Assembly: GCA_964234715.1 (NCBI GenBank)
Contig: OZ174275.1
Direction: 5' to 3' (one strand)
DNA from: Podarcis melisellensis
Lineage: Eukaryota
DNA: 64,000 nucleotides
Part shown: positions 17,637-60,874 of the stretch, in pieces
Layout: each line of letters begins with the position of its first letter
How positions within the stretch are numbered: the stretch's first letter is position 1
Translations under genes and position numbers: made by a program
The notes under the pieces: model-generated
What the model saw: the letters and a program-made list of their open reading frames with translations, nothing else
Told to the model about the DNA's origin: nothing
Databases searched by the model: none

Positions 17637-20149
17637 GGCTTGGCCTGCAAAAATGAAAGAGACTTCTTGCTCAAGGCACAAAAAAACAAAAATCCATTCA
17701 TCTCCCCACAAATGGTAGGACGTATATTGCAACAATGTAAAACAGCATCATGCTGCTGCAAAACTCAAATGGTTTTCTCAACCTTCTGCCTACCTCCTAT
17801 ACCTCAAGGCCACTCTACATCTTAAAAACAGAAGTGAGCAAAAGGAAGCAGGATCTGTGGCTTTCACTACACATCTCTTGCAAAAAATATAACCAGACAG
17901 CCAGTGTCAACTGCTGCAACCTCTCACATGTTCCCATTAAATATTGTTATAGTGGTGGGGGGGGGGGACTATACCCTAGAGATTATTAAATGGCTGGATT
18001 TTGATTACTGGAATGTGAAGGGAGAAATATAAGCTGCAGAGAAATTCCTGAGCTGGCCTATGCAAAATGACCTGGCCAAGCTAGGGTTAACTAAAAAACA
18101 CACCTGTCCAGACAGGTATTCGGAAGGTTGCCATGGTAACTATGTTTGAGGCAACAGGAAAAGGGAACCTGGTAGCAATGTGTACTGGGAAAAAGAAGCA
18201 GGAAGAGGGCTGGGATCTATCTTTGGGTGGGCTATCTGCAGAGTTGGGTTGGAGAGATGCCTTGGACTCCAGGGCTGCACTGCTGTGGGGTACAAGTTCC
18301 TTTTGAAATGACCATGCTGTAAGGTCTGGAATCCCTCCATGCAGACTAAAAGTGTAAATAGGTGAATAAACCATATTTCTTAAAGCTACAACAGCCTCTG
18401 CCGTGTCTCAGTTTTCGAAAGGAACAGAGACACTGGGTGAGTGCCTGGAGCCCCATTGACTCTTGCCACCATTCGGCAGAGAGAAGGGTAGGCACCCAAC
18501 TATATGCCATTTTAATTTTTTTAAAAATACATGTTGTCACATACGCATTGGGACAGGAGGAACGCCTACTTCTGTAATGTGTGACACAGCCCTGAGGCTG
18601 CAATCCCATGTCCCGGGAGCCAGTGCAGCTATTAAGGCCCTCACTGAACACAGAACTACTGCTGAATAAGGACACACATGATTGTCGTGCAAAGTTGTAA
18701 ACTTACATACAAGATACATGCAGTAACAATCTCAGTTTTTACCTAGCATTTGTTTGTGCAAATATCTTTTTCATAAATAATGCTCCTCCTGATGTTAATA
18801 TCCAGTGGATATTAAGCAAGCACTCAACCTATTTTTTGCACTACGCTTTTACACCTCCTTCAACGCTAGCTTTGCTTCCCCTCCCTATGGCCATTTTGCA
18901 TGCTTCTCCTCCGCCCACCTCCTTCCTGCCATTTCCGCTTTCCCAGAGATTCAAAAACATCACACATGCCCACAAATTTATATTTTAAATAGATAAAATC
19001 TATTCCACAGTTGAAATGGGAGCAGTTAATAGTAATCAAAGGAAAAATTCAAGTGCTACCATATTGAACTGGGGAACAGGTACCTCCCAATAAAAAAGCA
19101 GTCAGAAAAGACAGGAGTCCCCATTCTTCCTAGTCTGAATCTTATTTAGTATGCAAACTTTTTTAAAGAACAGTGCAAATCTGTATGCAAATCAAAGGAA
19201 TGCAAGCCTTGGCATGAAGCTGAGTGCTGGATATGACTTGAGATATGTTTTCTTAACAGAAAGTATGTTAATCTTCACCAAGCCATAGGAAAATGCTACA
19301 GAATTGTTGCAAAACTACCTTACCTCAGACAACCAACTGAGTATTCAGAATTAAGTACACTACAGGGCTTTTAAAATTCAATTCCCTCTCTCTCAGCAGC
19401 AGCCACAGACTCTTCCAAACTGCAGTATGGAATGACAAACTACTTTACCTCGAATTTGCACTGACAAACAATTGTTGTTTTTTTTAAATGCAAAAACAAG
19501 CTATTTCACAGCAGAGTCACAAGCAGCATTGACACCTGTCTTTGCTGCCACCTTTTGCTTGGAGCACACAACTTAAAATCTTAGCTTTCTCTATTTCTAT
19601 GGATGATTCCAATTTCCCCAGGAAAGGGAGACTTAATAATGGTTTATACAGAAGCGACTTTTTCTAACTTCAAATTCACTCTGCCTTTTTGATATCTCCA
19701 TTTTTCTCCTCCCATTCCTCCTGTTCGGGCTTGCCCTGCTAAATTCAAACGGTACCTGGCAGCCGAATACGGAAACGAAGAGACTCTCTTGTTACTGAGA
19801 ACGAGCTGATGGAGAGTAAATACCCCTGAACTTGTGTATGCTTACAATACCTCCCTGCAGTCTAGCCTGACCCTCAGCCCACCAGTTCCCGAAAGAGTCG
19901 CCAAGCAGCCTGGCATCCCCTCCGAATAGTTCCCAGGCTGCAACCCTATAAAAGACCCGCTTACCCAGACCACGTCCTATAAAGAGGTTGGGGTGGGGGT
20001 GAGGAAACCTACTGAAGCCCAAGGAGAGCGCAGCTACGACCTCTTCGCGCACCAATTTGCATTCGAGCCATGCAAAAAGAATAGGTTTTTGTAAGCTCCT
20101 GTCCATTCCCAAACACAAGCCTGGTCAGTAACACATGGTGTTAGGCATA

Positions 20150-21480
20150 AAGGCCATGGACGAGAGCCAGTGAGAGGGGCGGAATGGATGACGCCTCGAG
20201 GGCCGGGTAGAGATGCCTGGAGGGCCGCATTTGAACACCCCCCACCCGCGCAAAGCTCTGTAAGGCTTCTCAGGCGCCCCCTCCGCTCCAGACACCCACC
20301 ACGCCCGCCGAGACGCCACCTACACCCTCTCCCCGGCTCTCTGCCGCAGCCGGCCGAGCAACGGCCGGTGTCCCCAGGAGACCGACCTCCGAAAGCCTCC
20401 CCTCGTGCCCGCTTTCCCCCCTCCACGGCTTGTAAACTCACTTGGGTGGGTTGGGCCCCCGTCGCTCCGCCGCAGGTCCCGTTTGTCCGGCCGCCGCACG
20501 AGCCGGAGAGCACCTCACGCCAAACGAGTAAAACCGCCCAGGGTTCGGTACGTCAGGCACGCCGCCCGCTCCTATTTTCAAAGAGCGTCACCGCCGCCGC
20601 GCTCCAATGGGAAGCGCGGTTTTTCAGAGCGGCGCCTGCTATTGGCTCAGACGCGACTGGGCGAGACAGGAGGGGAAGGGCTCGGAAGTCTTTCCGCCGG
20701 CTCACTGTCTGGCTTTGAGTTTCCGCTTCGTGCTGGAGGGACGGCGGGTGGGCGGGCGGCTGGAGGTGACTGGCGCTTTCAAACTTGGGGGATTTAAACA
20801 TCAGCGCGGGTAAACCGGAGGTAGCCGTTCGTTCTTGCTGCAACCTGAGGCTGTTGGCCTTCGGGGGGTTTTTCAGCAGAAAATAACAAAAAATGGGGCA
20901 TGTCTGGGAAGAAAACCTTCACCGCTGCACTTTAAAAGGGCTTTAACAGCCCCGACATATTTACGTTTGCATTGGCAGGACAACGTTCTCGTTTCCTTTC
21001 CATCGCGCACGAACACAAATGTGAGCTTACAAGAGCACGACCGCCTTTCTTTGTTGGTCCAGCTGCCCAGTCCCAGCTCCCATAAAGTCCCAGACTTCTC
21101 CTTTGTCTCCAATAAGTAGCTGTGCCCTCATTCCTCCCCCGCCCCCCGCATCAAAATTCAAAAAAAAAAGCAAATGGTCCCGTCCTCGAACAAAGGAATG
21201 GTCTGGTCTGTACTATTTTTAAAAATCTCGAATTCGGGGCTTGACAAACTAGGAAAGAATCCGTCTCCTTGTTCATCTCGGGGTGGGGATGCAACGTCCT
21301 CTTTAAGATTTAACTTACAAAGGCTGCAGCCAATAGGCGTCGTCTATTCGTATAATCCGCCCTCTCTGCGCGTGAGCCGCGATGTAGCTGCGCTGCGGAA
21401 GGGGTGAGAAGGCGCGCGAGGGGGCGGGCGCTCGCTTCGAATGCTGAGGCGGGCGGAGGGCGTTCTGCTGTGTTGTTTTT
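20150..21480. promoter_or_regulatory. CpG island / bidirectional promoter shared by the two INCENP copies
   Basis: CpG-dense between the divergent genes. Minus-strand donor gtgagt at 20441-20436 (probable non-coding exon 1 of copy A). CHR TTTGAA on minus at 20577-20582; CCAAT 20604-20608; ATTGG 20641-20645; CCAAT 21330-21334; GC box followed by TTCGAA at 21436-21441. Confidence 0.75.
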
Positions 21481-22124
21481 AAGAATTCAGGCACTTACCG
21501 TGCAAGTTTTAGGTGTGCTCCCTGCAGGGTTTGCAGTTTGCCTCTTTCTGGGCAAGCGACGGAGAACTTAAGTTTGTTTCCTTGGATTTGCTATTAACTA
21601 GCAGGTTCTGAGCATTTTCCTCCAGCTTTGCTCGACTCCTTTATCTTGGTAGGGAGGGAGCGGCTTGCGCTCATCCTCTTTTTCCCTTTCTTATATTACC
21701 CAGGAAGCTCTCTCCCCATTCAGCCCCTGGCAAGCAGCAAAGGAGTTAAACAATTTGCAAACGTAATGGCGCTTAATCTAACTCTTCTAAAAGCAAAATC
21801 TAATCAGGCTAGTTGAAAAGTAACCGTTCCTAACCGTATTGAAAACCCGGGCAGCGTTGGCTTCCTAGTTTCTCCCTATTACTGATTTTGCATGATGTAA
21901 GTTGTTTAACATTACATATGTATAAGTTGATGGTTACTCTTCGTTTGTCTTTCTGGCCTGTTAGCTTTCTCGCTCAACTTCAGTTTCCATGGCAGACTCA
22001 GACAAGCACGTTTGTAAGAAAATTGGTTGGTTGTCAATATTATCTGCTGCTAGGAGGAAATCACTATGCAATCAAATGCAGAATGCAATGATTAATGTAT
22101 TTTTCTCCTGTTTTAACCAGTGCC

Positions 22125-22261
22125 ATGGCAGAGGCAGGAGGCCCCACTCATCTTCTAGATGTTTGTAGCCGGAAGTTCACAGAATTCTTGTTCAATGCTG
22201 AACATAAATGCTTGGTGTGGTTGCGGGAAATCGAGGACGAAGCCCTGAAGATGTTTGATAG
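22125..22261 (+). CDS. INCENP-B first coding exon (CEN box)
   Basis: ttaaccag|TGCCATGG; [45 protein letters not shown]; AG|gtaggc. Confidence 0.92.
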
Positions 22262-25200
22262 GTAGGCTTAGGCTTTGACCCTTGAATCCCAGGCATCTTA
22301 TAAAAGGGGAATATAACTTTTTCCACCAGTGCCATAATTTCTGCACTATTCTTAAGAGATTTAAAAAATGCAGAGTACCAGTCTGATGGAAATCAAGGCT
22401 GTCTCTCTGGCATGTGGGTTTTGTTTTTGTTATTCTGCTCCTGGCATAAGCTGGGTATTTGCATCAGAAGTTTAGGACTGACTGTTTGAGGGGCTTTTCT
22501 GCATGTGGATTCAGTGGCTGTCACTGTGATAAATACATATGAATATATTATTCTTTTACTATCAACTGGCTGGTATTGCAACATGTTCTGGCCTGCTAGA
22601 ATGGCAGTATAATATTTAAGATTTTCTTCTGAAATAGGGACCAGCGTATTGTATTGAATCCAGCTAAACTTTGCTGAGGCTAGACTAGACCTATTGGGAG
22701 CAATGGATTGGTAATGTCCATTAATTTCAGTGGGTTTCCTCTGAATATGCCAAACATTGAATACAACTTGCAATCTTTATTTTTTATTTTGGTTCAGTTC
22801 ATTTATTCAGTAGATTGTTTTTAATAGCAACTTCAGTGCTGAGCCTGAGCTGATGCCCAGAACGCCTTCTCAAAAGAAGTATCGAAAGAAGAAACGATCT
22901 TCATGTTTTAAGGATGAATATAAGGAAATAACTAGAAAAAGGTATTGCAGTCAGAGGTCACAGAGATATAATATTTTTAGATGTTCATCTATGTGTATTT
23001 AAAAGAGCTATATCAATTCTGTACTTGCCTAGGACTGAATTATAACTTGCTAAAGTGGTTGTCCCCAGGTTTTGCTAATATCATGTTCCTCTCTCTGTTT
23101 CAAGATTATACTTGTCAGCCAGCACCATGCAGTGCTTAAATCAAGCCTTAGTTTTACCCTGCGCTGGGCACCTAATAAGGACAATGACTATTCAGTGGAG
23201 TAACCTATTGTTACAAAAGCCCAGTGCCTGCCCCTCTCTCTGCCAAGCAGTGGCAAGAGCGCATGAGGCCACAGGCACACATGCAAGGTCTGTGTCCCTT
23301 TGGAGAATGGAAGACACGGCAGACACTGTCATGCTTTAAGAAATAGGGTTTATTTGCCTATTTACACCTTCAACCTGCATAGAGGGAGTCTAGATCGTAC
23401 AGCATGACCCACGACATTGCAGGTGACCTTTCGTCCCCTTCTCTAAGGTGGATCTCAGCCTTACTTCCTCCTCCTTCTGCCCAGAAGCCCCTGTTTCAAA
23501 ACTCCCCTTTCCTGGCCCCTCACAGTTACCCTGGCAACCATTGTGACATCTGACTCCTCAGGTCACAGGATCCTTCTGTGGCCCCTCAAAACCTTTTTGT
23601 AATGCTAGCAGGTCTCCTCTTCTCACAGCCAGGCTGGTTTGCATAAGCCAGCCCAGGAATTCCTTTGCAGCTTGCATTCTCCCTTCATACCACAAATAAC
23701 CAAAATCCTAGCATTCATTAATTTCTAGGTTTATCCTGTCTATAACACTACAAAGAAAATGGAGGGATTTGGTGTGGTCACACTCAATTCTAGTGGAGAA
23801 AAGCTCTGTGGAATATCTGAAATTTGTATCCCAGTATCTGGTGCCACCCTGTGGCTTAACATAGAATAAACTTTTTTTTTAGATTTAAAATTTTTTAACA
23901 ATAGGTTTATTTGCTTGTTTCTCTTTTAAGACTGTCTAGAAGACGAAGCAGTGTAAAGATAGTACCTTCCCAGTGTCTGTCCCCATGTGAAGAGAAACTG
24001 AAAAAAATTGATGTGGGGATGGCAAGATCCATATCTGGTTTTGCGGCCTGCTCTGTTGCTAAACCAACTTCAGAAGTACAGTGTGACAAGTTGACTATGT
24101 ATCCAGCAGGTGGTGGAGCACTTGGTACTGACTGTAGCCAAAATAGTGAATTATCAGGAAAACTGAATGAGGAGATGAATGGAGACCCTGAAATCATCAC
24201 TGTGGGTTCTAGTGGCTGTTCAGTTGCTAGGCCTGGGGCTACAGAGGCTGCAGGTGTAGCAAATAGCTCTGCGCTGGTGCTGACAGACACAACTGATCCG
24301 GGAAACACAGAAAAAGATGCTGTCAGATCAATGCGTACATCCACTCCAAACACTTCTTTGAATGAAAAAGCAATGTGTGAAATTGAAGACTTTCCTGCCC
24401 AAGAACTAGTCACTAATATGGTGCCCGAGGGAGAGTTTTCCCGAGGGTTAAAGAACAACACTGGAACTTCTGCAGACTCTCAGTCAAGCCACCCCCCTCC
24501 AAATAGACCTCGCAAGAGCAGGCGGGTGTCACTCGCGGAGAAATACTCACTAGCCAACAAAAGGAAAAGCATGATTCGGAAATCCATCCACAAGAGCGTT
24601 GCTCAGAAGAAAGCAGTTTGGGACTCCTCATCTACCTCTAGCCAAGTAAGCTGTAAGTAAAGACAATTCAGTTCTGGGATGTAAGGTTCTACAAGCTGTC
24701 AATATGTAGCCTTAATTTTGTGACATATGGGAAAGAAATTGGCATCTCCAATATGCTGCTTATATAGAAAGTGTGGGGTCACTTCCTAATTGGAGGGCCT
24801 TCGAAACTTGATAGCTAACCCTGGTACACACAGTGTATTTGCCTTCTTTTTGCAGGCTAGGAACTACGCTGAAAAGCACACTGGTATTCCTTAATAGTTC
24901 ACGCCTCACATCTCCCCTTAACTAACACTGATTTAATAAAACCTGTGGCATACTATGCTCTTTGTCATGCACAGTGAAAGTGCTGAATGAAGACAAGTAT
25001 CAAATGGGCTGGTATGTTAATTCTGTCCATGTGTGTGTGCACACACCAGAGAGAATACACACACATACACCATTCCCTGTAGCAGAACTTGTTGATATGT
25101 TTAAAGTTCTGCCTCTTAGACTGACAGAGTTGCTAATGGGAGGAATAGAAGCAAACCACACTTTTACCCTTCAAGCATTTGTTCAACTAATGGTTTTCTT

Positions 25201-28200: not shown

Positions 28201-31200
28201 TGCATAAATGCTTAGCATCTTGTCTTTCCAATGGAAAGGATTGAGGCACAAGAGACCTGAATCCTGGCATACTGTTACTATGCCTAGGTTAGCATTGTCT
28301 AGAGTACACGTTGTGCCCATGGTACGATTTCCACCTAACCTTAGCTGCCATCAGTTGAGGGTGGCTTTTGTGATACTGTTTCAGGAAAATACCCTTCATT
28401 GAACTAATTGTGCCTTCTCCACAGAAACAGCTGAAACTAAAATTACTGACACCCAGGTCTGTGGAGCTGACTATTCAGCCCAGAACTGTCCCCATGAGCA
28501 ATTGCAGAATATACGGTATGTTTTCTTTTGGGAGCATAATCTGGTGTGGCCTCTCTTTTTTCCTTTCAGCTTTGATTTAATCCACCTCGGTTTCCAGTCA
28601 ATGCAGTTACCAAAAGTTTGTTTCAGGTAGAAAGAGTTCTCCTGGAAGGTATTATGATGCCTTGTGTTAGGGATTGGTTACGCAAGTATATCTGATGAAA
28701 GCTTACCTTTGTTCTGGGAGATGAGTTCTTCCAGGATGGGTCCAGCCAGTTAGCCATATTCTTCTCTCTTTTCTTATCCCCCCACTCAATGGGTCACTGT
28801 TGGCAGGTGGGTGGACTTAGAAATAGTATGCAGTCCATTATCTTTACTGGTAAAAGCTCCATAATGAACATCTAGTATAACAGATCAGAGGAAATTTGGA
28901 TAGCTGGGTAAGCTTAACATGTGTTATGTACATTGACACAAAATTGGAAGTGTAATGCAAAATTGGCTATCATGAAACCATGTGGCATAACAGTATACAG
29001 TCGTACCTTGAATCCCGAATGCCTTGGTACTCAGATGTTTTGGCTTCCGAACGCCACAAACCCAGAAGTGAGTGTTCCGGTTTGCGAACTGACGGGGTTT
29101 CCATAGCTTCTCATTTGCTGCAGGAGCTTCCTGCAGCCAATCAGAAGCCACGCTTTGGTTTCCGAACGTTTTTGAAGTTGGAACAGATTCCGTTCTACTT
29201 CCAAGGACAACTGTATATTCTTGAACATGTTACTATATCAAAGTGTTATTTTACTCTAATCTGAAGAGTCTGAAATTTTGGATTCAAAAATATATAGAAG
29301 GTTTTTTTTGTTTCTTGTGCTTGCTAGGTTTTTGTTTTGTTTTTGTGGTTTCCTCTGTAATCCCCTCCCCAGTTTTCTTTGAGCTTCACTGGAGAGCTTA
29401 TAGGGCACCTTGACCTCTAAAATGACATTGAGTAAGAGGCCCAAACCCTTTTGATCCTGCTGAATCGTTGGGAGTCTTCAGACCTCTGACAGCAAGGATA
29501 ATTTATGTAATTGGGATTGCTATGTATACACTTCGTGCTCTTTTCAGGAGCCAGAGTTATAAACAAGCAATGGATGAGCTGCCTGCTGCCCAGCACACAC
29601 AGGATGGAGGCGCTTCTCTTCCTAGTCACAAACCCACATCTCCTGCAAACAAGCCCTTATCTGGCCCAGGCAAGGTAAATAAATGCCAAGGACAACATAA
29701 GGGCCCTTTTCTGATGCCACATCACTGGCCAGCCACTAAGAACATCCATACTCTTTCGACAGATCGCACGGCCTTTCAAAAACTTCTTCCAGACAATACA
29801 GAAGAGCCAGCTACTCAAATCCCCAGGGTCTGCAGGCCACAATAGTGTCATGAAAAATCTCATCAAACGTGGCACCCCCAGTAAGCCTACCTCCAAGGTA
29901 AGTGTCAAGGATGCTGCTCAAGTAAAAAGTCTCCTACACACTGAGCTCCTGGCAGCTGCAGTTACCTTGCGTAGCAGAGCTAAGGGACCTCTGCATGAGA
30001 CCTTGCAGAACTGCTGCCAGCTGGATTGGGCTTGGTGAACTAATAGTGTGGGCTTATGCATCCTTTTATCTCACTGAGAGATGTGAGGTTAGGGCTAGGA
30101 TTGTCATTTTGTAAGTGGCCTCGTGGGAAATTTCCAGCGCATACTAGCAAGAGAATTTTCTTCCTCCACCTGTGCATGTGGGTTCGATCGGTCTGCCTTA
30201 CTCTTGGGGAAACCAATTTGGGAGGTCACCAGTCAGACCAAGCCATCATCTTCTGCCCTTTGTCCTATCTGAAGCATGGCTGAAGTCTCTTCAAAATTAA
30301 GCTTGTTGGACTTCCCAGCTTTGGTTTAGTTTAATTTAATTCCCATTCCTGCTGTGGAACTTGGGATCTTTGATAGCCTTAAGGCAGCAAATTGGGATTT
30401 GTTTGCCTCATCTCTCCTCTGTTATTACTGATAAGGTAAAGAGGTTATTTGCTGGGCCCCAGGGCCATTTTGCATCTTCTCACAAGCCTTTCCTTTACTA
30501 AGGCAGAAGGAGCTGCTATTGAATCACTTTAATGAACTGGTTAGTTAGCATTTAGACTTGGAAACTAAGTAACTTGTCTTTCCTTTCCTTTTCATATTCA
30601 TCCTACCAAAGGGAGAGTTTGTTGTAAGTAACTACTTTTCTCATTTTGTGGCCTGGGAATTTATTTATTTTTAAAAAGACTTAACTGCCCTGAATACACT
30701 ACCCATTTTAGCTGCATATGGATCTTTTCAGAAGGTTTTGGTGTTTCACGTACCTAAGTACAGCTACACGTACTGATCTGGCTTTAACTCGTGGTAGTGA
30801 GGTTGGAGAAAACATTGCTTTTGTTGGCTAGTGGGTCAATAATAAATAAAAATAGTAAATAATAATAATAATAATAATAAATGGTTGCCACAACCAGAAG
30901 TTGTTTAAACTTTCTACACATCATAGGCAAAGGAGCGACAGCGTCTTGAGAGTTTGCGGAAAAAGCAAGAAGCTGAGCAGCAGAGGAAGCAGAAAGTTGA
31001 GGAAGAAAAAAAGCGGCGACTAGAAGAGATAAGGCTGTAGGTAGCTGTTCACCCTCAGTCCCGTTTGGATAACTGTGGGCCATTCACTTAGATAAGTCCA
31101 ACCTGCAGTCTAAACTAGGCATGGCAGGCCATTTATACAAATTATACCACCTTTCCCAAGCCTGGCATATGATGTCCATCTTGAGGAAGTTCATGTTGCA

Positions 31201-34200
31201 GCTAAAAGGAAGGAGGCGACTCAGGAGTGCACTCTCGGCGAGGACCTGATTCTTCCTTTGCATCGCCAGCTTGAATGCAAGCTAGGGAAGAATCAGCAGC
31301 CTGGTGGCATCAGGTGATGGGCAGGCGGACCATAGGTGGCCTGTGGGGGGAGGTCATGCCAAAGGAAGAGAGAACTCTCTTCAAATATGGCAGGACGTAC
31401 AGGTGTAAACTCTTCATAGCACTGAAAATATATTTCATCTATATTTATTGGGGTGGGGGAAACTCAGTCACCTGAGATCACTATGATGTCAGATGAACCG
31501 TTTTTCCTTGGTGGTACAGCATGCTAACAAAGGAAAATTGAAGTCAAGCAAGGCTTGCTGCCTTTTTGTATTATGTTGGAAACTGCCCAGAGTGGTTGGG
31601 GCAATCCATTCAGATGGGCAGGATATAAGTAAATAATAATAAAAGTAATAGTAATAATAATAAAATTACCACTGATCAACTGGTTCAAGCCCTGCTTTCT
31701 ACAAGGATTGGCAGCACTACCAAGTTCCCCATGGGGAGCTCTGTACTGCAGCCACTTCCAGTGGGCTGATTGGCCATGATACCATCCTTCCTTGCTAATG
31801 AACAATTGGGAGTGCATGTTAAGGTTCCCTGTGGCGCGTTCCCTGCCTGCCCCATACCTGATACCACATATCATGTCAGGTATGGGCCTGGTGGACGTGG
31901 TTTGGGGAAGTAGCATCGCTTGCCAAATTGGGGCTTTGTGCCAGGCCTAAGGTTCCCCAAACTCTACTATAAACACACCTGTTTCTCTATATCTCACAGA
32001 AAGCGGGAAGAACGGCTAAGAAAGACCCTGCAAGCTCGAGAACGGGTGGAGCAGATGGGGGAAGAAAAGAGGAGGAGAATGGAGCAGAAGTTATCTCAAC
32101 ATGAAGAAAGGAGCGAGAAGGTGGGAGATTGTCCCATTTTCTTCCTAGCCTTTTAATGACAATGGTCAGAGCATGTAAGCGGATTCCTATTGGTATGTTG
32201 TGTCATCTATTCTGAGAGATGTGGTTTTATGTTTTATTAAATAGGCTACCAATCCCAACGTTAATTCTTTGCATACAGTGGTACCTCGGGTTACATACGC
32301 TTCAGGTTACATACGCTTCAGGTTACAGACTCCGCTAACCCAGAAATATTACCTCAGGTTAAGAACTTTGCTTCAGGATGAGAACAGAAATCGTGCTCCG
32401 GCAGCGTGGCAGCAGCAGGAGGCCCCATTAGCTAAAGTGGTATCTCAGGTTAAGAACAGTTTCAGGTTAAGAACGGACCTCTGGAATGAATTAAGTACGT
32501 AACCAGAGGTACCACTGTATATGTAATCCAGGGGTCACTAATGTGGTACCCTCCAGATGTTGCTGGAATACAGCTCCCATTATCCCTGACAATTGGCCAT
32601 GCTGACTGAGGCTGATGGGAGTTGTAGTCCAACAATATCCGGAAAGCACCACATTGGCTACTTTTGGTTTGGCCTTTTAACAAGAGCTGAAGAACTTTTG
32701 CTCAGATGTTTCTGAACTCTGACTCACATCAGCCCCAGCCTGGGTGACCCAAGGTAATGATGATGGGAGTTGCAGTCCAAGAACATATGGAGGGCACTTG
32801 GTTCCCTAGCCTTGCTCCTGGCAATCCTGCGAGGCCAGGGAGGCTGAGAGGCTACAACTAGCTCAAGGTCACCTCATGAGCTGCACCCAGTGGGGATTTG
32901 AACCTGGGTCTCTTCACTTCTGGTCTGGCACTGACTACAGGATCGGCACTGAGATCATAAACTCAAATCAGTACTTCACAGGCATGTAGGGTTGACAATT
33001 CTTAACTGGATTCTGTTCTCCCCCCCCACACACACACTTCCCAGATACTATATGAATTGTTATTCAGTATGGTCTTGAGGTCTGAAATATGAAAACTAAA
33101 ATATGAAAGGATCTTTCACACAGGTGCGGGAAGAGAAAGTAGCAGAGGAAAAGACCAAGAAAAGAATATCTACTAAGAAAATGGGGGAAGCAGAAGCGCG
33201 AAAACAGAAGGTGCTTCAGATGGTGAGCACTGTACTGAATGTCAAGTGAAAGGGTGTACAGAAGAGAATGAAACTGAGGCAGAGTATTAAGCCCTGCATG
33301 CTGGAGACTGAAATAGTCCAACTCCTGAGCAACGTCTTATTGTAATCCTGAAAAGTGCATTTGCCGTTGCCTGAAGTATCAAACCCTGGAGGTCCCCTTG
33401 GAAAGAGAAAGATGCATTTAAATCTCCGCTGACCTGTTTGTTCCTATTAACAAAGCCAGGCCATAAGGAGTTGTCAGAAGGGGTGAGGAGTGAGCAAAAT
33501 ATGGAAGGACTCTTGGTGGTGAGAATATGTAGGTTTTTAAAACCTACCCGAATGTCTTAGCATCTAGCTTCCTAGCATTCATGTGGGTAAGAGGTAATAC
33601 CATTGCCACATGCCCTCAGAGATATTAAATACAAAATCCTCTAGCTCAGGCATTACCTTCTGCATCTTTTGGGGAGCCATGAAAAAAGCACCCAAGTCCC
33701 ACTGTGGTTTTTGTTGCACGTATGGGTGAGAATTGAGAAGTATTGTCTGAACTGCTTGGTTTGTTTCTAAAGCATTCTGCTTGGCTGTTTAGCTTTTTTA
33801 ATAAACGTTGTTACAATAAAACCTCTCTTAATACAATTCCTGTTGTGTACATAAGGAGCAGTTAAATATAATGGGGCAGAGTTCTCTTTGTTGCACTACA
33901 GGCAGCCTTTCTCAACCTTGGGTCCCCAGATGTTGTTGAACTACAACTCCCATCATCCCTAGCTAGCAAGGCCAGAGTTCAGGGATGATGGAAGGTGTAG
34001 TCCAACAACATCTGGGGACCCAAGGTTGAGAAACACTTCACTACAGGGATTTGGCATTTCCCTGCCTGCTCTTCATGTTTGTGGTGGGTGCTGATTCTGT
34101 ACTCCTTGTTTCAGGAAGAAGGGCACAAAAATCGAGAGTGGAAGACCGTTGGAGAAATTAAGAAAATGCTGGAGCACAATTGCACAAAACAGGGGAAAGG

Positions 34201-37200
34201 GTGAGGACTTTGCTTCCTCGGTTACAAGGTTGGATGACCCTAGGAACACTTGATGGAATGGTGTAGATGCAATTCTGATGACTTCCCAAAATTGTATGTA
34301 AAAGGGCCAGTTCTAAAACCATATGGCTTTTTTGGGGGGTAATATATGCATATTGTAATTAAGGGAAACTGCTTAAAGCTGCAGTCCTAACACACACTTG
34401 CTAGTAATCCAGTCACAAGTAAACATGTTTATGTATGCTCTCCTTTCACTTTTTAGACACCATGGGCAGCATGATAAAGAGAAATTGGTGAGACCCCAGG
34501 AGCTAGCAGTAGTTACAGAAGAGGAAGAAAATCTGAAGGTACGCCAAGGAATTGGAAAGCCAGGATTTGAAGTGGGGCTGGGCATAAAGCCCCACTTGCC
34601 AGCAGCTATGTAAACAAGTCCTTCTAATTTTAGCAGATGCATTTTCAAAATGCAGGACATCAACTTGTCCCTTGTACTGCTGATGGGAACTGCTTGAATT
34701 GAATATTTGCTTGTCTGACACCATTTAAATTCTGTAAAGTGCTGTGCTAATCTTGTGCAGCTATGTTCCCACCATACTGAACCAGATTGTAGGTTTGTGC
34801 ACATTTTTTGCACGATATGCTCTACAAGAGAACTGAGTTTACACTTATATTTGTTCTTCAGACAATGGAATGGGTGTCTGGGGAGTCACCCAGGGGAAAG
34901 GTAACAATCATAATTATGCTTCAGTGATGATGGGGGAGCAGGTGGGAAGAGTTAATGGACTTATTAGTGGAGCATCTTAATGGATTTTTCCGAAAAGAAA
35001 CTTGTTTTTGAAGACCCTCTGCATCTTTACAAAAAAAAGCTGCTGGTGCCATCTGGTGAAGAGGCTACCCTACTAAATTTCAATGCAGTCTGGGTGAAGT
35101 GGATGGAATCAAAGACCATTGTAGAATGGTCAGCTAATAAATCTGATCTTGCCAATAGGATGAACACAATTCTACCCGCCTAGACGAGCTGCAGCAAGAA
35201 AAGAAAGCTGTGCAGGTGGACACAGTTCCTACTACTAATAAATGGTTGAATATAACTGCCCAGGTAAGCGATAGATAGTTGAGGCCTGTGGTCAGATACC
35301 TGGGCTTTGAATTGGAAAGTGACTTGGATGTCCGTTGGTATCTCACAAACTTGTGATACCTTTTCAGTAACTGAAATTAAAAGCAGTCCTCTGTTTTATG
35401 CTCGGAGAGATATTCACTCTGTCTATGCCCTGAGCAGTGGGCAGACACAGTCCAAAATTGCCTTCTGTTGCCCCTCCCTTCCCTTTGCCTGTTAAGTAAG
35501 CACTTGGGGATGGGGCAGTGTCTATGTTTCTGCAGTTCCCCTCACTTGTTGGCTATAGAGCAAGCAGTTGTCCTTCAGTGTATCCTTGCTGTGTAGTGTA
35601 CCTCAAAGCATCATTAGGGCCTACACTGTGATTAAAGCAGATCAAGAACAGCCAGGCTGTATATTGCTGAATGTGTTAAATGCCTCCAACTTGGGGACCT
35701 TTTATTTCTCTTCTCTCCTTACCTTACCAACACCTTCTAGCACAGCCGCTTGGCTGTCACTGGCATAGGGTTTTGAGTGAGTTTTGTGACCCAGATGCTA
35801 CATTAAGCATTTCCTGAGGCTGTACACTTCCTTCCTCTTTGAAGGAGACAAGACATCAAAAATAACACTCTTCTGAAAACATATTGGAAGAAACCTGCAG
35901 CTGTTTATGCTGCAATAAGCAGACATGAATTCTAAAGGTGCTGCAGTTCTGACAAATGAGCACAAGGGGGCATGAGAATATGAAGAACTAAGCTGTTTGA
36001 TTGCCGTTATCAAAGAAGACTGGGAATATTTGTAAAGGGCAGCCCTTCCATGGCTGTTGCCAGTGCTTTTTTTCTGGGGGGACGCATACCCCTAAATATT
36101 TTGTGAATCTTTGTACTTTTGTCCATTTACTGTATTTATTTTTCCCAATTTGAACTATAAAATGGTGATTTTCTTGAGTCAAAATGAGAGAACCCCCTAA
36201 ACCTTTTTAAAGAAAAAATGTACCGGCTGTAGCGCCGCCATAGGAAGGACTTAGAAGAAGCAGTACTTCCTAATACTGAGGGGGTTACTTTGGAGCAATG
36301 GTATCTCGCACCCTATACACACACACTTACCGGTATGCTATTCCATTTAGCCTGGCAGCAACCAGAATGAGGGAGGTGAAGCTTCAAAATTCTCCCATGT
36401 TGCCTTGTGAGTATCTGGTGTGCAGCTCCAATAACTCACAAAAGCGCAGGAGAAGGATTGATTACTAGAAGCCAGCAAAAATGCAGTTCAGCATTGTTCT
36501 GGTTAGAGCTGGAGTTATTTTCTTTCAGCCAGTGAAGGAGGAAGCTGTGAGTGCTATATATAGCAATGCCCTTGTGTGTCTATGAAGTCCTAGACTTCAT
36601 GGTGTTTCAAAGTGTCAGCATGTTGGAACAAGCTCAGTTCCGACGTATAATGTAACTGGCCGCTTTTGCATTATGTACATTCATGTATTCATTCTTGAAG
36701 TAGCCACTCCCTGGTGGCATATTGTGATAGACAAACTGGAACTACCAATCTCAAGCCTTAATTTTTAGGAACTTGCATAGCTGGTGCCTTTTAGTTCTGT
36801 GACGCAGTCACCAGCATCTCCCTAGCTATTTATCTTTTGGACTGTACCACCAATGGCTCAGGCCCGCAATAGTTCAAGGACCGCCTCTCCCTTTATAAAT
36901 CAACCTGGCCTCTGCAATCATCATCTGAGGCCCTTTTTCGTGGGCCTCCTCTGCAAGAGGTCTGGAGGGTGGCAACACAAGAACAGGCCTTTTCTGTAGT
37001 GGCTCCCTGCTTTTGGAATGCTTCTCCCAGGGAAGCTCACCTGGCACTGTCATTATATATCTTTAGGTTCCAGACAAAAATGTTTCTCTTCAACCAGGTC
37101 TTGGGCTGATTAATATTCTATGGCCTTTTAAATGTATTTGGGATGAGTGTTTTTGCTTTGCTTTGCTTTGTTTCTAACTATTTATTTGTGATTGTATTCT

Positions 37201-38777
37201 GTTTTTTTATCTTGTGAACCACCCTGAGATCTTTGGATGAAGCGCAGTATATAAATTTAATAAACAATAATAATATACACACATTACAGAAAATAAAATA
37301 AAAAACTTCAAGCTCATTAGAGCATCCATATTCCATATTAAATCTTCTAGGTATGGTAATCATAAGCTTTCCATAGTGATTAATGATCCCGGAGGACATA
37401 TCCACAGTGTCATTTGAGGTGCTTGCATAATAAGAAACTTAAAAAGGCACAGGTTGAAACATTGGAACTGGAAGATGTATAGCCAAAGAGCCCTGTTGGC
37501 AAATTGCTGCACCTGTAACATTAACCAATCCATTCAGGTCTCGTCTTTATTACAGAAATCTCCTGCTGCCCGCTCTAGTCAAATGAGCCCCCAAAGTCTG
37601 AAAGGTACCAAGTCCCTCAAAGTCAACCACAATGACTATGGAATGGACTTGAATAGCGATGACTCCACGGATGACGAAAGCGAGCCCAGGAAACCCATCC
37701 CTGCATGGGCCACTGGTAAGAGTGAGTTTTCAGTGGCCGCAAAATGGTATCACTGAAATTACAGGGTTCTTGCTTCAGATTCTGATGGTCCTCTCGGTTT
37801 TTGCTGGGTCTGTCCTAATACGTAAAAGACATAAACAAATCTCTCAGAGCTCCGTTCTGCTACAAGACCCTGACAGTACCACAAGAGCCTTTACAGCGCC
37901 TGTACACAACTGTACGGAGAGAGCAAAGTCAATGTAGGCTTCATTGCTCTCTATGAGACGCTCTTTTTGGATGGTGGATGGTTGGTTGAAGGACCCTGAG
38001 TGAGATGCAAGGAAGGGAAGATCTCCCGGGGTGAGAGACAGGGAGAAGAAAGGCAAACCCCCAGGTGAGAGCTGGGAGGGCCCCCCGCTTTCTGTGAGTG
38101 GCAAGGGTTAAGAACTACCTTTGAGAGAAGACTTTCTTTTTTCTTCCTCTGTTTTTGTTTTTATTTAGTTTCTTGTATTGTGAAAAAGCTTTAATAAAAT
38201 CTTACGGGGGGGGGGGTTCATCGTGTAGCCAACTTGCCCAGCTTGAAATATAATTTCTGTTCTACAGGCCTGCCTCTCTTTGGTCATCTGACAAACTTGC
38301 TTTTTAATTCCTTTGGGGTTTTTTTGAATCAAAATGATAAGTCTGCTTGTGCGGTGGAGACTATTGGATAATTACAGTGAGGTATTCTGTATGTAGGCCG
38401 AGCCATACCTAGATCCGTTGAGTGCTGCAGCTGAATTGAGCTGCTGGCTAGAGTCCACTCATAGATTGGGTTTCACATTTTCCCCTCTACGTAGAAGTGC
38501 TTCAAGTGGAGATGTGTTACTACTTGAAGGATTACTCACAGAATAACTGCTTGTTTCCTCAGGTCTTCAGCTTAATGAAGCTGTTACATACCAATACTAC
38601 AACCCTCCAGATATCAACAAGTTCTTTGGAGTAATCTTAAGTCCTAAACTAGAAGCTATCTTCTACAAAAGTAAGCCGAGGTATTTCAAGCGCACAAGTT
38701 CAGCTGTTTGGCAGTCTCCACCTCTTCCGGGTACCAAAGCAGCATTGCGTGCCTCTAACAGTATGAAGAAGCACTGA
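22125..38777 (+). CDS. Inner centromere protein-like paralog, copy B (complete, about 838 aa)
   Basis: GCCATGG start. Exons 22125-22261, 22828-22941, 23931-24652, 25220-25268, 26536-26569, 27879-27996, 28425-28515, 29548-29674, 29763-29897, 30612-30623, 30927-31036, 32000-32120, 33124-33222, 34115-34200, 34457-34538, 35159-35263, 37556-37715, 38563-38777 total 2517 nt in one open frame, with the same intron phases as copy A. Intact IN-box ending [17 protein letters not shown]...MKKH*. Confidence 0.92.
22828..22941 (+). CDS. INCENP-B exon
   Basis: [38 protein letters not shown]; 114 nt. Confidence 0.92.
23209..23747. mobile_element. Probable solo LTR in an INCENP-B intron
   Basis: TGTTA...TAACA termini, flanks CTAT/CTAC, minus-strand AATAAA near 23350. 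Confidence 0.45.
23931..24652 (+). CDS. INCENP-B large disordered-region exon
   Basis: Within ORF 23911..24660; LSRRRSS...[19 protein letters not shown]; T|gtaagt donor in the same phase as copy A. Confidence 0.9.
25220..25268 (+). CDS. INCENP-B exon
   Basis: ttctccag|GCCAC...CATAG|gtgagc; [17 protein letters not shown]. Confidence 0.8.
26536..26569 (+). CDS. INCENP-B 34-nt exon
   Basis: cctctccttag|GCCTTT...AGTGAG|gtaagg; phases 2/0. Confidence 0.7.
27127..27260 (+). mobile_element. tRNA-Lys-derived SINE with CR1-type tail
   Basis: Aligns by eye with the reverse complement of 722-857. Confidence 0.75.
27630..27787 (+). mobile_element. Sauria SINE 3' fragment
   Basis: Matches the 3' half of 47489-47834; ACCTTT tail. 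Confidence 0.8.
27879..27996 (+). CDS. INCENP-B exon
   Basis: tttttcctatag|ACTTTG...AAAG|gtaaac; open frame, phases 0/1. Confidence 0.75.
28425..28515 (+). CDS. INCENP-B exon
   Basis: ttctccacag|AAACAG...ATACG|gtatgt; phases 1/2. Confidence 0.78.
28998..29213. mobile_element. Tc1/mariner (Tigger-like) MITE
   Basis: TA|CAGTCGTACCTTG...CCAAGGACAACTG|TA imperfect TIRs with TA TSD. Confidence 0.7.
29548..29674 (+). CDS. INCENP-B exon
   Basis: [11 protein letters not shown]...SGPGK|gtaaat (compare human RSYKQAVSEL). Confidence 0.88.
29763..29897 (+). CDS. INCENP-B exon
   Basis: [45 protein letters not shown]|gtaagt. Confidence 0.9.
30612..30623 (+). CDS. INCENP-B 12-nt micro-exon (GEFV)
   Basis: Pyrimidine tract then caaag|GGAGAGTTTGTT|gtaagtaac. 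Confidence 0.78.
30927..31036 (+). CDS. INCENP-B first SAH exon
   Basis: [37 protein letters not shown]; 110 nt. Confidence 0.92.
32000..32120 (+). CDS. INCENP-B SAH exon
   Basis: [40 protein letters not shown]; 121 nt. Confidence 0.92.
32276..32517. mobile_element. Tc1/mariner (Tigger-like) MITE
   Basis: TA|CAGTGGTACCTCGGGTTAC...GTAACCAGAGGTACCACTG|TA TIRs with TA TSD. Confidence 0.85.
33124..33222 (+). CDS. INCENP-B SAH exon (24 nt shorter than copy A)
   Basis: [33 protein letters not shown]|gtgagc. Confidence 0.9.
33900..34037. mobile_element. Palindromic MITE (gactacaactcccatc family); relatives at about 1646-1740, 26110-26235, 32530-32810, 43780-43880 and 57672-57740
   Basis: tttctcaaccttgggtccccagatgttgttg...caacaacatctggggacccaaggttgagaaa near-perfect hairpin. 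Confidence 0.75.
34115..34200 (+). CDS. INCENP-B degenerate SAH exon
   Basis: ccttgtttcag|[30 protein letters not shown]|gtgagg; phases 0/2. Confidence 0.78.
34457..34538 (+). CDS. INCENP-B degenerate SAH exon
   Basis: cactttttag|[27 protein letters not shown]|gtacgc; an alternative in-frame donor exists at 34487. Confidence 0.75.
35159..35263 (+). CDS. INCENP-B exon
   Basis: [35 protein letters not shown]|gtaagc (KxLNxT as in copy A and human). Confidence 0.8.
36840..37270 (+). mobile_element. L2-type LINE 3' fragment
   Basis: ggcctttctgtagtggctccc...tggaatg, similar to the other L2 3' ends in this window. Confidence 0.6.
37556..37715 (+). CDS. INCENP-B penultimate exon (start of IN-box)
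   Basis: [13 protein letters not shown]...[27 protein letters not shown]|gtaaga. Confidence 0.94.
38563..38777 (+). CDS. INCENP-B terminal exon (IN-box, TSS motif)
   Basis: [70 protein letters not shown]; TSS at 38694-38702. Confidence 0.94.
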
Positions 38778-47834: not shown

Positions 47835-50399
47835 TAAACCGTGTAGGGCTTTATAGGTCATAACCAGCACTTTGAATTGAGCCTGGAAATAGCTAGCCAG
47901 TAGAGCTGTTGTAGAAGGGGGTCCCATGTGGGACTAGTTTGTATGCCACATGTTTCAAAAGGCATAAGAGGACCATGAGGCTGCACAGACTAGCTTGTCC
48001 CATTTGCCATGCCTGTAGCCGCTCCTCCCCATATGTGAGGAGCCCTTCGTGCAAACTGATGAATACATATAGAGCTTCTCAGTGAATGGAAGCCCATGAG
48101 GGGTTTTGTCTCTTATTTGCCTTTCTTTGAGGTCTCTGCCTCCTTTACCTACCGGTAATCTCTCCATTGTTCTTGCTTTTTTGTCTCTTAACCCACTACC
48201 GACACTGTCCACTATCTCCCCTCCTTTCCTGGCTCTCTTAGCTTGGCTGTCTATTGGTTCTACTTCTTCTTTTGATCTTTGAGGATGGAGGAATCTCCTG
48301 CGACATATTATTTGACCATATTTATATATTACTTACCGGTAATTAACAAAAAACCTCTGAGCAGTTTACAATGTAAAATAATTGATTTAGAATCGAGTGG
48401 TAAACACAAATATAAAATTTATCAAGATGCAAATAAAACCAGCAGCTATAAACCAAATATACATAATAGTATTGCATGTTGAAAGTGCATGCTAATTATT
48501 GCCCCCAAGGAAGAGCTGTAGCTTGAAACAGGTTAGATGCCACGACATTTTTAAACAATCAATCAATATTTAACTGCCCTGTGATCTTCAGATGGTGGTA
48601 TACAAATTTTAATCATCATCATCATTTGTACTCAGCATGTTGCGAGTTGCTTTCCTTTTTTGAATATCAAATCGCATCACCCTGACCAAGCTGCTATTGA
48701 AATCCTTTAGTTAGCCTGTTACTCTCTTTGACAAGAATAAACCTTTTAAATTCGTAGCAGTTTGAAGTCTGCTGCTTCTTTCCGACTTTCAGTCTACAAG
48801 TTATGGGCTGAAACAATAAGCCTTTGACAACGCGCCCTGGTAATACAAGAGTCTAAAGAGAATCCACAGCCACTAAGGGCTATCTACTTTATAATCACTG
48901 CAGAGTGTTTTTCTACTCTCCGAATCGTCTCTGAATCCATACCTGATTCTGCAGCTTCCCTTCCCACTAGTACGTTACTGGGGCTGATTCAGGACTTTCT
49001 CACTTGGGAACTAAATTTCACAATTCTGCCAGTGTTTTGAAATTCTGAAAATGTGAAGGATGCTGAAGATGATGCGATGATAAAAAAAGAAGTACAGTTA
49101 TATAGTGCATCATTGTGAAAAGGTGTTTCCTGGCACATTCAAGAAAATGTATACTTGGAGGTTTGTTTGTTAAAAAATCATTTGGCAGAACATATCACCA
49201 GACCTCACAGAAGAGCCTTATTGATTTTGGCTTGACGCCTGTTTTATGTACAATGAGCACTGTGTATGTACACAGCTATATTTTCTCCTGTCAAGGAGTG
49301 AAGTATGTGTGCAATGTATACAGTGCTATAAAGCAGTTTTTTCCAACTCTCTTTTTGATTGAGGAACCCCTAAAAAGCACTGCTGTAAAAGAAGGTGCTA
49401 CATTTACAGGAACTGTGAACGCACATTAAAACAGAAGAATAAGTGTTTTCTCTCTCTGGAAGCTGCGACCTGGCCATCAGCTGCTCTGAGAGACCAGTTG
49501 TCTCTGGGCTCTCTCTGAACAGCATCCTAGCCTTGCCTGTTCCATCAGGTTACAGTAGTGAGAAAGAAAAGGCAACAGGGCTATTTCAGCCGCTCTGCTG
49601 GGAGACCAGCTACCTTTGGCTAGTCTTCTCCCTCATGGGTCACCTAGCAATAGCCATTCCTTCACGCTACCAGACTTGTTATAATTGACCTGTTAAAAGA
49701 ACTGTAACTTTAAGAACTGGTATCTTGAGTTTCCTTTTCCCCTTTCTCCCACTCTTCTTCTTTTGAAGAGTAGGATTAAAAGCAGTTTAAATAAATAAAT
49801 AAAAATTACTGGTAATTTCAAAAAGGCAGTTGCCCCTCTACCTCCCCTTGCATTGAAATAACGCACTGATTCAACAGCTAGTTGCTTGGGTACTCCACTT
49901 TCAAGCTGGTAAGATGCCCACCACCCAGAGAAGGCTGGAGATGATCTTTGCACTGCCAACATTGGCTTGCAACCCACTTTTAGCACCATTCCACTACATC
50001 ACAATGATTCTTCTCTCAGAAGAGATGAAGTTTTTGTGCCGCTATTTTTCCAGTCTCCGGGTAGCAGTTCATCACTTGATGTTACTGGGGATGCCAATTT
50101 GCAGTAAAATATTGGGGAGCGGGGCGGGCAGGTAAGCCCCGCCCTGCATAATCGATCACACGATGCGACGCACGCACACTATCTGAATGGTCCCCTCAAA
50201 TTTTTTGTTGGGGGGTGGGCCCCCTAGAAATTGGCTCCTATGGATGTTACACTCCCAGAAGTATATGTGCGCGCCCTCACGTACACAATGTTTTGGGTTA
50301 TGCGTTAACTAGCTTCCTTCTATATAGGGTACCACTGCCTTCGGGTCTTTCATTCCCATATTTCAGCATGCATCTTTTATTTGAATTTCGAATAACACC

Positions 50400-55810
<5,411 letters not shown>

Positions 55811-60803: not shown

Positions 60804-60874
<71 letters not shown>

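Follow-up and report, generated by a model that had tools for sequence, protein, structure and literature searches.

An INCENP-like paralogue of Podarcis melisellensis with a predicted single-alpha-helix of about half the canonical length

Introduction

The spatial-separation model of error correction depends centrally on the distance that Aurora B can cover from the inner centromere, which has so far been probed mainly with engineered INCENP mutants. In chicken, the single-alpha-helix (SAH) domain of INCENP comprises residues 503-715 of P53352, of which residues 503-597 bind microtubules, and DT40 cells with an INCENP carrying only the SAH's N-terminal half grow like wild type, DSN1 phosphorylation being rescued less well (Samejima et al. 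2015, PMC4571873). A second chicken gene was named INCENP-like, and in DT40 cells its mRNA amounts to 1.4% of that of incenp (Xu et al. 2009, J Cell Biol, PMC2806593); that paper gives its existence, its low expression in DT40 cells and an unknown function, and is silent on the SAH. A second INCENP with a divided passenger-complex role is also found in Oikopleura dioica (INCENPa/INCENPb) and Plasmodium, where the paralogues stem from independent duplications in distant lineages; in the part of the source available here, chicken is given as the only INCENP paralogue described before Oikopleura, and no SAH shortening comparable to the one presented below is reported for the Oikopleura and Plasmodium paralogues (Feng et al. 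2019, PMC6681789).

Here, we analyzed a stretch of 64,000 nucleotides of the lizard Podarcis melisellensis (contig OZ174275.1, hereafter the window), in which two INCENP genes are arranged head to head, their start codons being located at 17627 (copy A, minus strand) and 22125 (copy B, plus strand). The same arrangement was observed at the Python bivittatus locus. A run of N occupies 12095-12222 of the window.

Results

Copy B as an intact member of the sauropsid INCENP-like lineage

The first coding exon of copy B (22125..22262, plus strand) encodes the CEN box, which was detected over 22122-22262 by Pfam PF12178 INCENP_N with an E-value of 2.7e-17 (62.9 bits vs a cut-off of 25). At the other end of the gene, the IN-box starts (14 residues...PRKPIPAW) in the exon at 37556..37715 (plus strand; Pfam PF03941 INCENP_ARK-bind, E 2.2e-07, 31.1 bits vs a curated cut-off of 22) and is completed in the last exon (38563..38777, plus strand), which also carries the TSS motif and the stop codon and can be aligned over its full length to residues 848-918 of a solved INCENP chain (E 4.8e-19); human INCENP was among the solved chains matched in this structure-sequence search. 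The KRTSSAVW motif is retained there, and the stop position is the same as in other INCENPs. When the Zootoca gene model (P0029, 843 aa) was mapped onto the window, every exon that could be placed was open, while tblastn of this protein on the window returned no match for residues 345-356 or for a micro-exon encoding GEFV. This 12-nt cassette was located at 30612..30623 (plus strand), just upstream of the SAH and flanked by AG and GT; it is alternatively included, being present in Zootoca P0029 and Podarcis P0017 and missing from, for example, Pseudonaja P0005.

Copy B shares with canonical INCENP, represented by copy A and chicken P53352, the exon structure, the phases, the CEN box, the IN-box, the TSS motif and the stop position, but lacks two features that the canonical proteins keep, namely the SAH's C-terminal half (for a total of 233-242 helix residues) and the PxVxI motif for HP1 binding. 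No P.V.[ILV] pattern was found in the large exon of window copy B or in four B-type proteins, whereas copy A carries PLVVI at 15014-15000 and the motif is also present in A-type proteins. The large middle exon of copy B is only 23% identical to that of copy A.

Quick trees separated an A clade and a B clade, each holding turtles, crocodilians and birds as well as squamates, represented in the A clade by window copy A, with an SH-aLRT support of 100 for the B clade and of 98 for the placement of window copy A inside the A clade of canonical sauropsid INCENPs. Window copy B was represented in these trees by Zootoca P0029, which is 84-100% identical to it per mapped exon, and the outgroup consisted of amphibians only, so that the split is not dated relative to mammals or amphibians. 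The B clade includes bird proteins annotated as "inner centromere protein-like" (the bird B-types examined were two full-length sequences and one fragment), and the published incenp-like primer translates to NQAILHQ, as in the IN-box of a galliform B-type protein (P0147). Chicken INCENP-like thus belongs to the same lineage as copy B, both having a CEN box and an IN-box. On these sequence comparisons, copy B can be identified as the lizard orthologue of sauropsid INCENP-like, an old INCENP paralogue; it is not private to this genome, the paralogue being already known from chicken (PMC2806593).

Exon structure of the SAH region

The SAH region of copy A, used as comparator, consists of six exons on the minus strand between 1939 and 4485 (4485-4376, 4289-4169, 3826-3704, 3023-2851, 2359-2245 and 2037-1939). 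Remeasured A/B exon sizes of 110/110, 121/121, 123/99, 173/86, 115/82 and 99/105 nt agree exactly with those of a preliminary description of the window, and its statement that the shortened exons keep their phases was borne out, as every difference in length is a multiple of three and the phase is identical at each A/B junction. AG acceptors and GT donors flank all 12 of the 12 exons. The interval totals 741 nt (247 aa) in copy A and 603 nt (201 aa) in copy B, both with open reading frames, which makes the whole interval of copy B 46 aa (19%) shorter. What is halved in copy B is the stretch with SAH character, and not the residue count of the interval.

All six exons of copy B lie on the plus strand. 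Exon 1 (30927..31036, 110 nt) forms the E/R/K-rich start of the helix and is 71% identical to exon 1 of copy A and 100% identical to residues 520-555 of Zootoca P0029, while exon 2 (32000..32120, 121 nt) is 83% identical to its counterpart. Exon 3 (33124..33222, 99 nt) carries, relative to copy A, an in-frame deletion of 24 nt (8 aa) that is common to all B-type genes. Exon 4 (34115..34200, 86 nt) is not SAH-like and encodes a 12-residue motif that is conserved in squamates and is predicted as a separate helix of 27 residues; an AG lying 4 nt within this exon (start 34119) leads to a truncated isoform. In exon 5 (34457..34538, 82 nt), which is predicted to be disordered, we found G, P and an acidic patch of 11 residues, the latter occurring in the B-types of both squamates and turtles and, in an altered version, in those of crocodilians. 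Exon 6 (35159..35263, 105 nt) ends in a conserved KWLNITAQ, homologous to the end of exon 6 of copy A.

Predicted length and composition of the helix

The E+R+K fraction declines along exons 1-6 of copy B (0.62, 0.60, 0.52, 0.41, 0.37 and 0.20), compared with 0.65, 0.60, 0.56, 0.62, 0.63 and 0.39 in copy A. The helix breakers described for the later exons of copy B were recovered, since the peptides quoted (a 22-residue peptide, HHGQH and VRPQE) all occur in copy B, and Gly plus Pro number 9 over its SAH interval vs 1 in copy A. By our own charge-pair score, the uninterrupted SAH-like run spans 106 aa in copy B and 233 of 247 aa in copy A, with the smoothed score in copy B remaining at or above 0.1 until about residue 93-106. 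The combination of dense E/R/K, opposite charges at i,i+4 and i,i+3 and absence of breakers was found in copy B in exons 1-3 only; exons 4-6 have E+R+K fractions of 0.20-0.41, seven G/P residues and scores of at most 0.1. Charge-pair runs in other sequences were 104 residues (median) in squamate B-types, 153 in the turtle B-type, 144 in the crocodilian B-type and 234-241 in A-types. Taken with the exon 3 deletion common to all B-types, these runs indicate that the SAH was already being shortened in the ancestor of all B-types and was reduced further in squamates, whose loss of SAH exceeds that seen in turtles and crocodilians.

AlphaFold2 (AF2) predictions were run on database orthologues (P0029 and P0091) standing in for the joined exons of the window, which were searched individually and joined only for charge-pair scoring, dN/dS and the tree. 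For the Zootoca B orthologue, AF2 placed a helix at model residues 4-109 (106 aa; pLDDT 83-97 over residues 11-100) and, after a break, a second helix at 119-145 (27 residues), followed by pLDDT values below 50. The A-type control from alligator was modeled as one continuous helix of 242 aa (residues 8-249). The confident helix of copy B would thus comprise exons 1 and 2 and the first two-thirds of exon 3, ending near a KKMGEA stretch (helix 1 ends at Zootoca residue 618), in agreement with the two and a half E/R/K-rich exons and the approximately 105 aa of SAH, vs about 230 in copy A, that were proposed from the sequence alone; the opposite outcome, a continuous helix across the region, is not what AF2 predicts for the Zootoca protein. 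Helix length and SAH behavior in copy B are, on both counts, predictions from AF2 and our score. A central SAH of at least about 210 residues characterizes the INCENP family, and copy B has about 106 continuous residues, with the N-terminal half present and the C-terminal half absent. Pfam returned no family for the SAH exons, only sub-threshold chance matches. We make no claim of amphipathicity for the helix of exon 4, since its hydrophobic moment (0.40) does not exceed that of the SAH.

Support for the exon junctions

The same B junctions are present in the gene models of more than 20 squamates, including Zootoca, snakes and Anolis, and a Micrurus entry (P0020), which is probably transcript-derived, spans exon 3 to the stop codon with the same junctions. 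A search for short transcript-derived fragments spanning exon 3 to the IN-box returned none from a lacertid, the Logan matches covering the IN-box only, and neither RNA nor protein of copy B was found for a lacertid; the junctions proposed here are based on conservation and on gene models from other species. Additional E/R/K exons, which the preliminary description had named as evidence against its own proposal, were sought throughout 29900-37600, introns included, as stop-free stretches of 20 aa with at least nine E/R/K residues, leaving aside the annotated exons and their shifted frames; apart from one weak stretch at 31350, this genomic screen showed no other E/R/K-rich open frame. An alternative end of exon 5 further upstream, at AAATTG/gtgaga (a 31-nt exon with a shifted exon 6 acceptor), by which the additional residues of the preliminary description would become intronic, was rejected because these residues show protein-level conservation in squamates and turtles, and to a lesser degree in crocodilians, and are colinear with exon 5 of copy A. 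Predicted isoforms, in which Podarcis X3 truncates the protein and Anolis X5 skips exons 4 and 5, show that the region is variably spliced.

Sequence constraint on the retained half and on the tail

The best conserved part of copy B is the retained SAH half. Mean identity among 22 squamates reaches 0.95 in exon 1 and 0.83 in exon 2, followed by 0.71, 0.65 and 0.54 in exons 4, 5 and 6, compared with 0.61 for the whole protein and 0.42-0.48 for the disordered middle. Between window copy B and P. bivittatus, dN/dS is 0.06 in SAH exons 1-3, 0.16 in exon 4, 0.17 in exon 5 and 0.47 in exon 6, with values of 0.13 in the IN-box and 0.59 in the disordered middle. In the first 95 aa of the SAH, copy B shares 73% identity with copy A and has an equal number of K+R residues (35), and the retained helix has its chicken homologue in residues 503-597, the microtubule-binding part. 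The peptide encoded by exon 4 is 29-33 aa long in different squamates, a group whose divergence we estimate at well over 100 million years. Judged by these substitution patterns, purifying selection acts on exons 4 and 5, which hold conserved non-SAH motifs and are not merely floppy. The tether had been proposed to be "shorter or floppier"; the shorter stiff helix agrees with our results, but a merely floppy remnant does not, given the dN/dS of about 0.16 and the conserved motifs of exons 4-5. This conservation suggests a specific role that pure tether length leaves unexplained.

Discussion

We consider it probable that copy B is an INCENP-like protein with a half-length stiff helix that provides a shorter or softer tether. 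Two readings that question the gene itself carry very little weight. Although the middle region is very divergent, the somatic expression of the chicken paralogue is very low (PMC2806593) and one predicted isoform is frameshifted, it is extremely improbable that copy B is a pseudogene or is becoming one, since every mappable exon is open, the CEN box, the SAH N-terminal half and the IN-box all show dN/dS values far below 1, and orthologues are kept in squamates, turtles, crocodilians and birds; on its open exons and dN/dS, copy B is an intact gene under purifying selection and not a decaying duplicate. We regard as highly improbable an annotation artefact in which the real transcript would have further E/R/K exons or other junctions: gene models are predictions and lacertid cDNA was not found, but the screened interval offered nothing beyond the weak frame at 31350, the same architecture recurs in more than 20 species and, from exon 3 onward, in the Micrurus entry, and amino-acid conservation reaches right to the proposed exon boundaries.

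The remaining readings concern the tail encoded by exons 4-6. It is improbable that this tail is simply a relaxed remnant, a reading with which the normal proliferation of DT40 cells with an N-half SAH INCENP (PMC4571873), the progressive shortening of the SAH over B lineages, the weak conservation of exon 6 and the indels of exon 4 among squamates would agree, but against which stand a dN/dS in exons 4-5 well under that of the disordered middle, motifs conserved across anciently diverged squamates, and splice sites and phases that are all retained. [quoted passage not shown] Identities above the protein average and the disordered middle, equally low dN/dS values in both exons, an acidic patch still recognizable in crocodilians and a separate helix predicted by AF2 with moderate confidence all argue for such a module; there is, however, no known partner, the exon 4 helix has no higher hydrophobic moment than the SAH, the length of exon 4 is variable, both exons are skipped in an Anolis isoform, and AF2 confidence is low in exon 5.

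In-frame deletions in exons 3, 4 and 5 removed about 50 residues, and the remainder of exons 4-6 no longer shows the E/R/K i,i+4 pattern, having acquired Gly, Pro, His and hydrophobic residues; these changes leave a predicted stiff helix of about 106 residues, compared with about 240 for canonical INCENP, and beyond it a short separate helix and an acidic stretch that is flexible. Taking 0.15 nm per residue, copy B would have a resting stiff length of about 16 nm, vs about 36 nm for canonical INCENP. A chromosomal passenger complex (CPC) built on copy B would still dock on Survivin/Borealin-type partners and activate Aurora B, would bind microtubules through the retained SAH half, and would offer the kinase a shorter, softer tether. 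Of the earlier proposal that microtubule binding and kinase activation are kept, the sequence part stands, with the N-terminal half close to that of copy A and the IN-box and TSS motif intact; the function itself we infer. Reasoning by analogy from the engineered N-half SAH mutant, we would expect the complex to favor inner-centromere over outer-kinetochore substrates, a plausible functional reading of the short tether. Counted in residues, however, the tether is only 19% shorter, and the disordered tail could regain much of the reach under force.

That engineered mutant (PMC4571873) has the first approximately 95 SAH residues only, almost exactly the confident helix of copy B, but fuses them directly to the C-terminal region, whereas copy B adds about 90 conserved non-SAH residues; moreover, the mutant was assayed in somatic cells, whereas copy B is a natural gene known here from sequence. 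The idea that copy B offers a "natural test" of spatial separation accordingly holds as regards a natural variant, with the qualification that an engineered precedent exists (Samejima et al. 2015). The value of the finding is limited in that the paralogue was already known, the half-SAH experiment had already been done and the functional side is inference. As expression of the chicken paralogue in somatic DT40 cells is very low, we would guess that INCENP-like acts in a specialized setting, either the germline or the early embryo.

An N-half-SAH INCENP has been maintained by evolution across all major sauropsid lineages. The crown age of sauropsids is, by our estimate, roughly 300 million years. 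We put forward only tentatively that sauropsids kept, over this span, a second CPC scaffold whose rigid spacer was cut to the microtubule-binding half and whose lost half was replaced by a conserved new motif; if true, this second scaffold would define a specialized CPC of the germline or early embryo that differs in kinase reach and may have a binding partner of its own. The predicted half-length helix would also be the first concrete structural property for INCENP-like, whose function has been unknown since 2009. With SAH-like runs graded from about 145-155 residues in crocodilian and turtle B-types to about 105 in squamates, and with canonical sister genes in the same genomes, these paralogues would provide a ready series of natural tether variants.

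Two divergent INCENP genes in the window

The window contains two INCENP genes arranged head to head, the canonical gene (copy A) on the minus strand and a second, INCENP-like gene (copy B) on the plus strand. Copy A has its start codon at 17627, its exons for the single-alpha-helix (SAH) domain from 4485 to 1939 and the first exon of the C-terminal Aurora B-activating IN-box at ~673-510, the remainder lying beyond the window edge; copy B extends from a start codon at 22125 to a stop at 38775-38777. Exons of the two copies were 71-78% identical at the DNA level where alignable, introns gave no alignment, and protein identity was highest in SAH exon 2 (83%) and lowest in the large middle exon (23%). 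Judged from their sequences, A and B are old paralogues. The best database protein match was Podarcis muralis XP_028592508.1, whose 90% cluster includes a Logan fragment with 98% identity across the large exon; this assigns the window to a lacertid lizard and not to human.

The two start codons, pointing in opposite directions, are ~4.5 kb apart, and between them the sequence is GC-rich (0.54) at 20-22 kb. This 17627-22125 interval resembles a promoter region, either shared or paired; an identical layout of two divergent starts was observed in the Python bivittatus locus (L001 1-10001). Downstream of copy B, a GC-rich island (0.575) at 50000-52000 suggests the start of another gene, and a GA-rich simple repeat at 60680-60960, unrelated to INCENP, can be read in three frames as extended Arg-Glu stretches without a stop. 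In copy A, a run of 128 N (12095-12222) separates the large exon from the FKNFF exon, and an HP1-type PxVxI motif (PLVVI) was found at 15014-15000 on the minus strand, as well as in three database proteins of the canonical clade (A-types). The motif was absent from the large exon of copy B and from four proteins of the INCENP-like clade (B-types; lizard, snake, turtle and alligator).

Copy B belongs to an ancient INCENP-like family

Copy B matched Pfam profiles at both ends, the N-terminal CEN box with an E-value of 2.7e-17 and the IN-box with one of 2.2e-07. Its last exon aligned over its full length with residues 848-918 of INCENP chains of solved structure, keeping the TSS motif and the same terminal KKH. 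A phmmer search of the full database with the large exon of B returned 16 clusters, with clusters or members titled "inner centromere protein-like", "A-like" or "B-like" from squamates, crocodilians and birds, to which a word search added turtles and many more squamates. In quick trees, in which the Zootoca protein P0029 represented copy B, the A clade (support 98, containing copy A as its squamate) and the B clade (support 100) each held squamates, turtles, crocodilians and birds. This shared span places the duplication before the sauropsid crown, a lower bound on its age set by an outgroup of amphibians only. The head-to-head pair also occurs in Python bivittatus. Copy B is thus the known, ancient INCENP-like paralogue and not a private duplicate.

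The INCENP-like paralogue itself is already known: chickens were reported to express it under that name, with mRNA in DT40 cells at 1.4% of incenp and a function given as unknown (Xu et al. 2009; PMC2806593). Translating the incenp-like primer of that study gives NQAILHQ, which matches the IN-box of a B-type fragment from sage-grouse (P0147) and so links chicken INCENP-like with the B clade. Feng et al. (2019; PMC6681789) present chicken INCENP-like as the sole INCENP paralogue described before Oikopleura. Our literature search found no paper describing a short SAH in INCENP-like.

The predicted single-alpha-helix domain of copy B is halved

The preliminary description had proposed that the SAH of copy B is reduced to about 105 residues from about 230 in A, and its observation is correct and its figures accurate. 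The six SAH-region exons measure exactly 110/110, 121/121, 123/99, 173/86, 115/82 and 99/105 nt in A/B, with AG and GT boundaries at 12 of the 12 exons. Because the length differences are 24, 87, 33 and -6 nt, phases are identical in both copies, as had been claimed, and the joined frames are open over 247 aa in A and 201 aa in B. The Zootoca vivipara model P0029 (843 aa) mapped exon by exon to the window, the mapped exons being free of stops and frameshifts, and the junctions of its exons 3-6 were exactly those first described. The same architecture was observed in models of snakes, geckos, skinks, Anolis and Rhineura, and, for the part from exon 3 through the stop codon, in a Micrurus entry listed only in UniRef (P0020), which we take to be transcriptome-derived; a search for lacertid transcripts covering the SAH-to-IN-box exons of B returned none. 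Scanning 29900-37600 in three frames, we found no further stop-free E/R/K-rich stretch beyond the annotated exons and their shifted frames, with one weak exception at 31350, and therefore no hidden SAH exon in this genomic interval that would restore the length.

The combined E, R and K fraction of B is 0.52-0.62 in exons 1-3, consistent with the proposed E/R/K-rich beginning, and then drops to 0.41 in exon 4, 0.37 in exon 5 and 0.20 in exon 6; in A it is 0.56-0.65 up to and including exon 5. The helix-breaking peptides quoted for B are present, and Gly plus Pro total 9 in the SAH region of B versus 1 in A. With a home-made charge-pair score, which rewards opposite charges at i,i+4 and i,i+3 and penalizes like charges, Gly and Pro, values of at least 0.1 covered 233 of 247 residues in A and extended only to residue ~93-106 in B. 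Applied to database proteins, this score gave a first SAH-like run without interruption of 234-241 aa in sauropsid A-types and 241-274 aa in amphibians, and ~153 aa in turtle, ~144 aa in crocodilian and 104 aa (median of 22 proteins) in squamate B-types.

Searches and folds used database orthologues in place of the joined spliced models of the window. For the Zootoca B region (input alignment of 33 B-types), AlphaFold2 predicted a first helix of 106 residues (pLDDT 83-97 at residues 11-100) ending near a Gly inside exon 3, followed by a break instead of a continuous helix, a 27-residue helix in exon 4 (block-mean pLDDT ~48-73) and then pLDDT below 50. An alligator A-type folded by the same procedure as a control gave one 242-residue helix with pLDDT of at least 80 nearly throughout.

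Origin of the shortening and constraint on the remaining tail

Alignment of the SAH region across A-types, amphibians and B-types of squamates, turtles, crocodilians and birds revealed an 8-residue deletion in exon 3 common to all B-types; their exon 4 has also lost ~25 residues from its second half, and their exon 5 its end. Squamate B-types have lost 10-14 more exon 4 residues, and a motif of the [12 protein letters not shown] type has taken the place of the remaining E/R/K pattern. A 6-residue AKKLAE-like segment of exon 4 (A position ~2950-2930, minus strand), kept by amphibians and all B-types, is missing from sauropsid A-types, indicating that the canonical copy too has changed since the duplication.

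Across 22 squamate B-types, pairwise identity averaged 0.95, 0.83, 0.64, 0.71, 0.65 and 0.54 in exons 1 to 6, 0.42-0.48 in the disordered middle and 0.61 in the whole protein. Nei-Gojobori dN/dS between copy B and Python, rough because synonymous divergence is near saturation, was 0.06 in exons 1-3, 0.16 in exon 4, 0.17 in exon 5, 0.47 in exon 6, 0.13 in the IN-box and 0.59 in the disordered middle; the contrast between regions is clear despite the rough values. Values of 0.16-0.17 against the 0.59 of the disordered middle speak against exons 4 and 5 as a decaying remnant. Of the shorter or floppier tether first proposed, the shorter SAH is thus upheld by prediction, and a merely floppy tail is disfavored by the conservation of these two exons.

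Gene models predict several splice variants in and next to this region. A 12-nt cassette micro-exon (GEFV; 30612-30623, plus strand) with AG/GT flanks lies between the FKNFF exon and SAH exon 1 of B, its residues being present in some orthologue models and missing from others. Exon 4 has a second AG 4 nt inside the exon (34115-34119, plus strand), whose use results in the frame of isoform X3 of Podarcis muralis (P0017); this frame stops inside exon 5, without the IN-box, and is open in the window up to the same stop (~34488-34490, plus strand). In Anolis carolinensis isoform X5 (P0055), exons 4 and 5, together 168 nt, are left out and exon 3 is spliced straight to exon 6 with the frame kept, and the corresponding skip (33222 to 35159, plus strand) would stay in frame in the window.

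Relation to the engineered short helix

In chicken INCENP, residues 503-715 form a 32-nm SAH, of which residues 503-597 bind microtubules, and INCENP with only the SAH's N-terminal half supported normal DT40 growth but rescued DSN1 phosphorylation more poorly (Samejima et al. 2015; PMC4571873). Copy B keeps almost exactly that half: its first 95 SAH residues are 73% identical to those of A, with 35 K+R in both and a net charge of +12 versus +10. The idea of copy B as a natural test of tether length has a precedent in this engineered mutant, which already shows the expected phenotype. At the level of structure the interpretation is reasonable. At 0.15 nm per residue, the predicted helices would provide a stiff spacer of ~16 nm in B and ~36 nm in an A-type; as the B interval is only 19% shorter in residues, the maximal contour length would be altered far less than the rest length.
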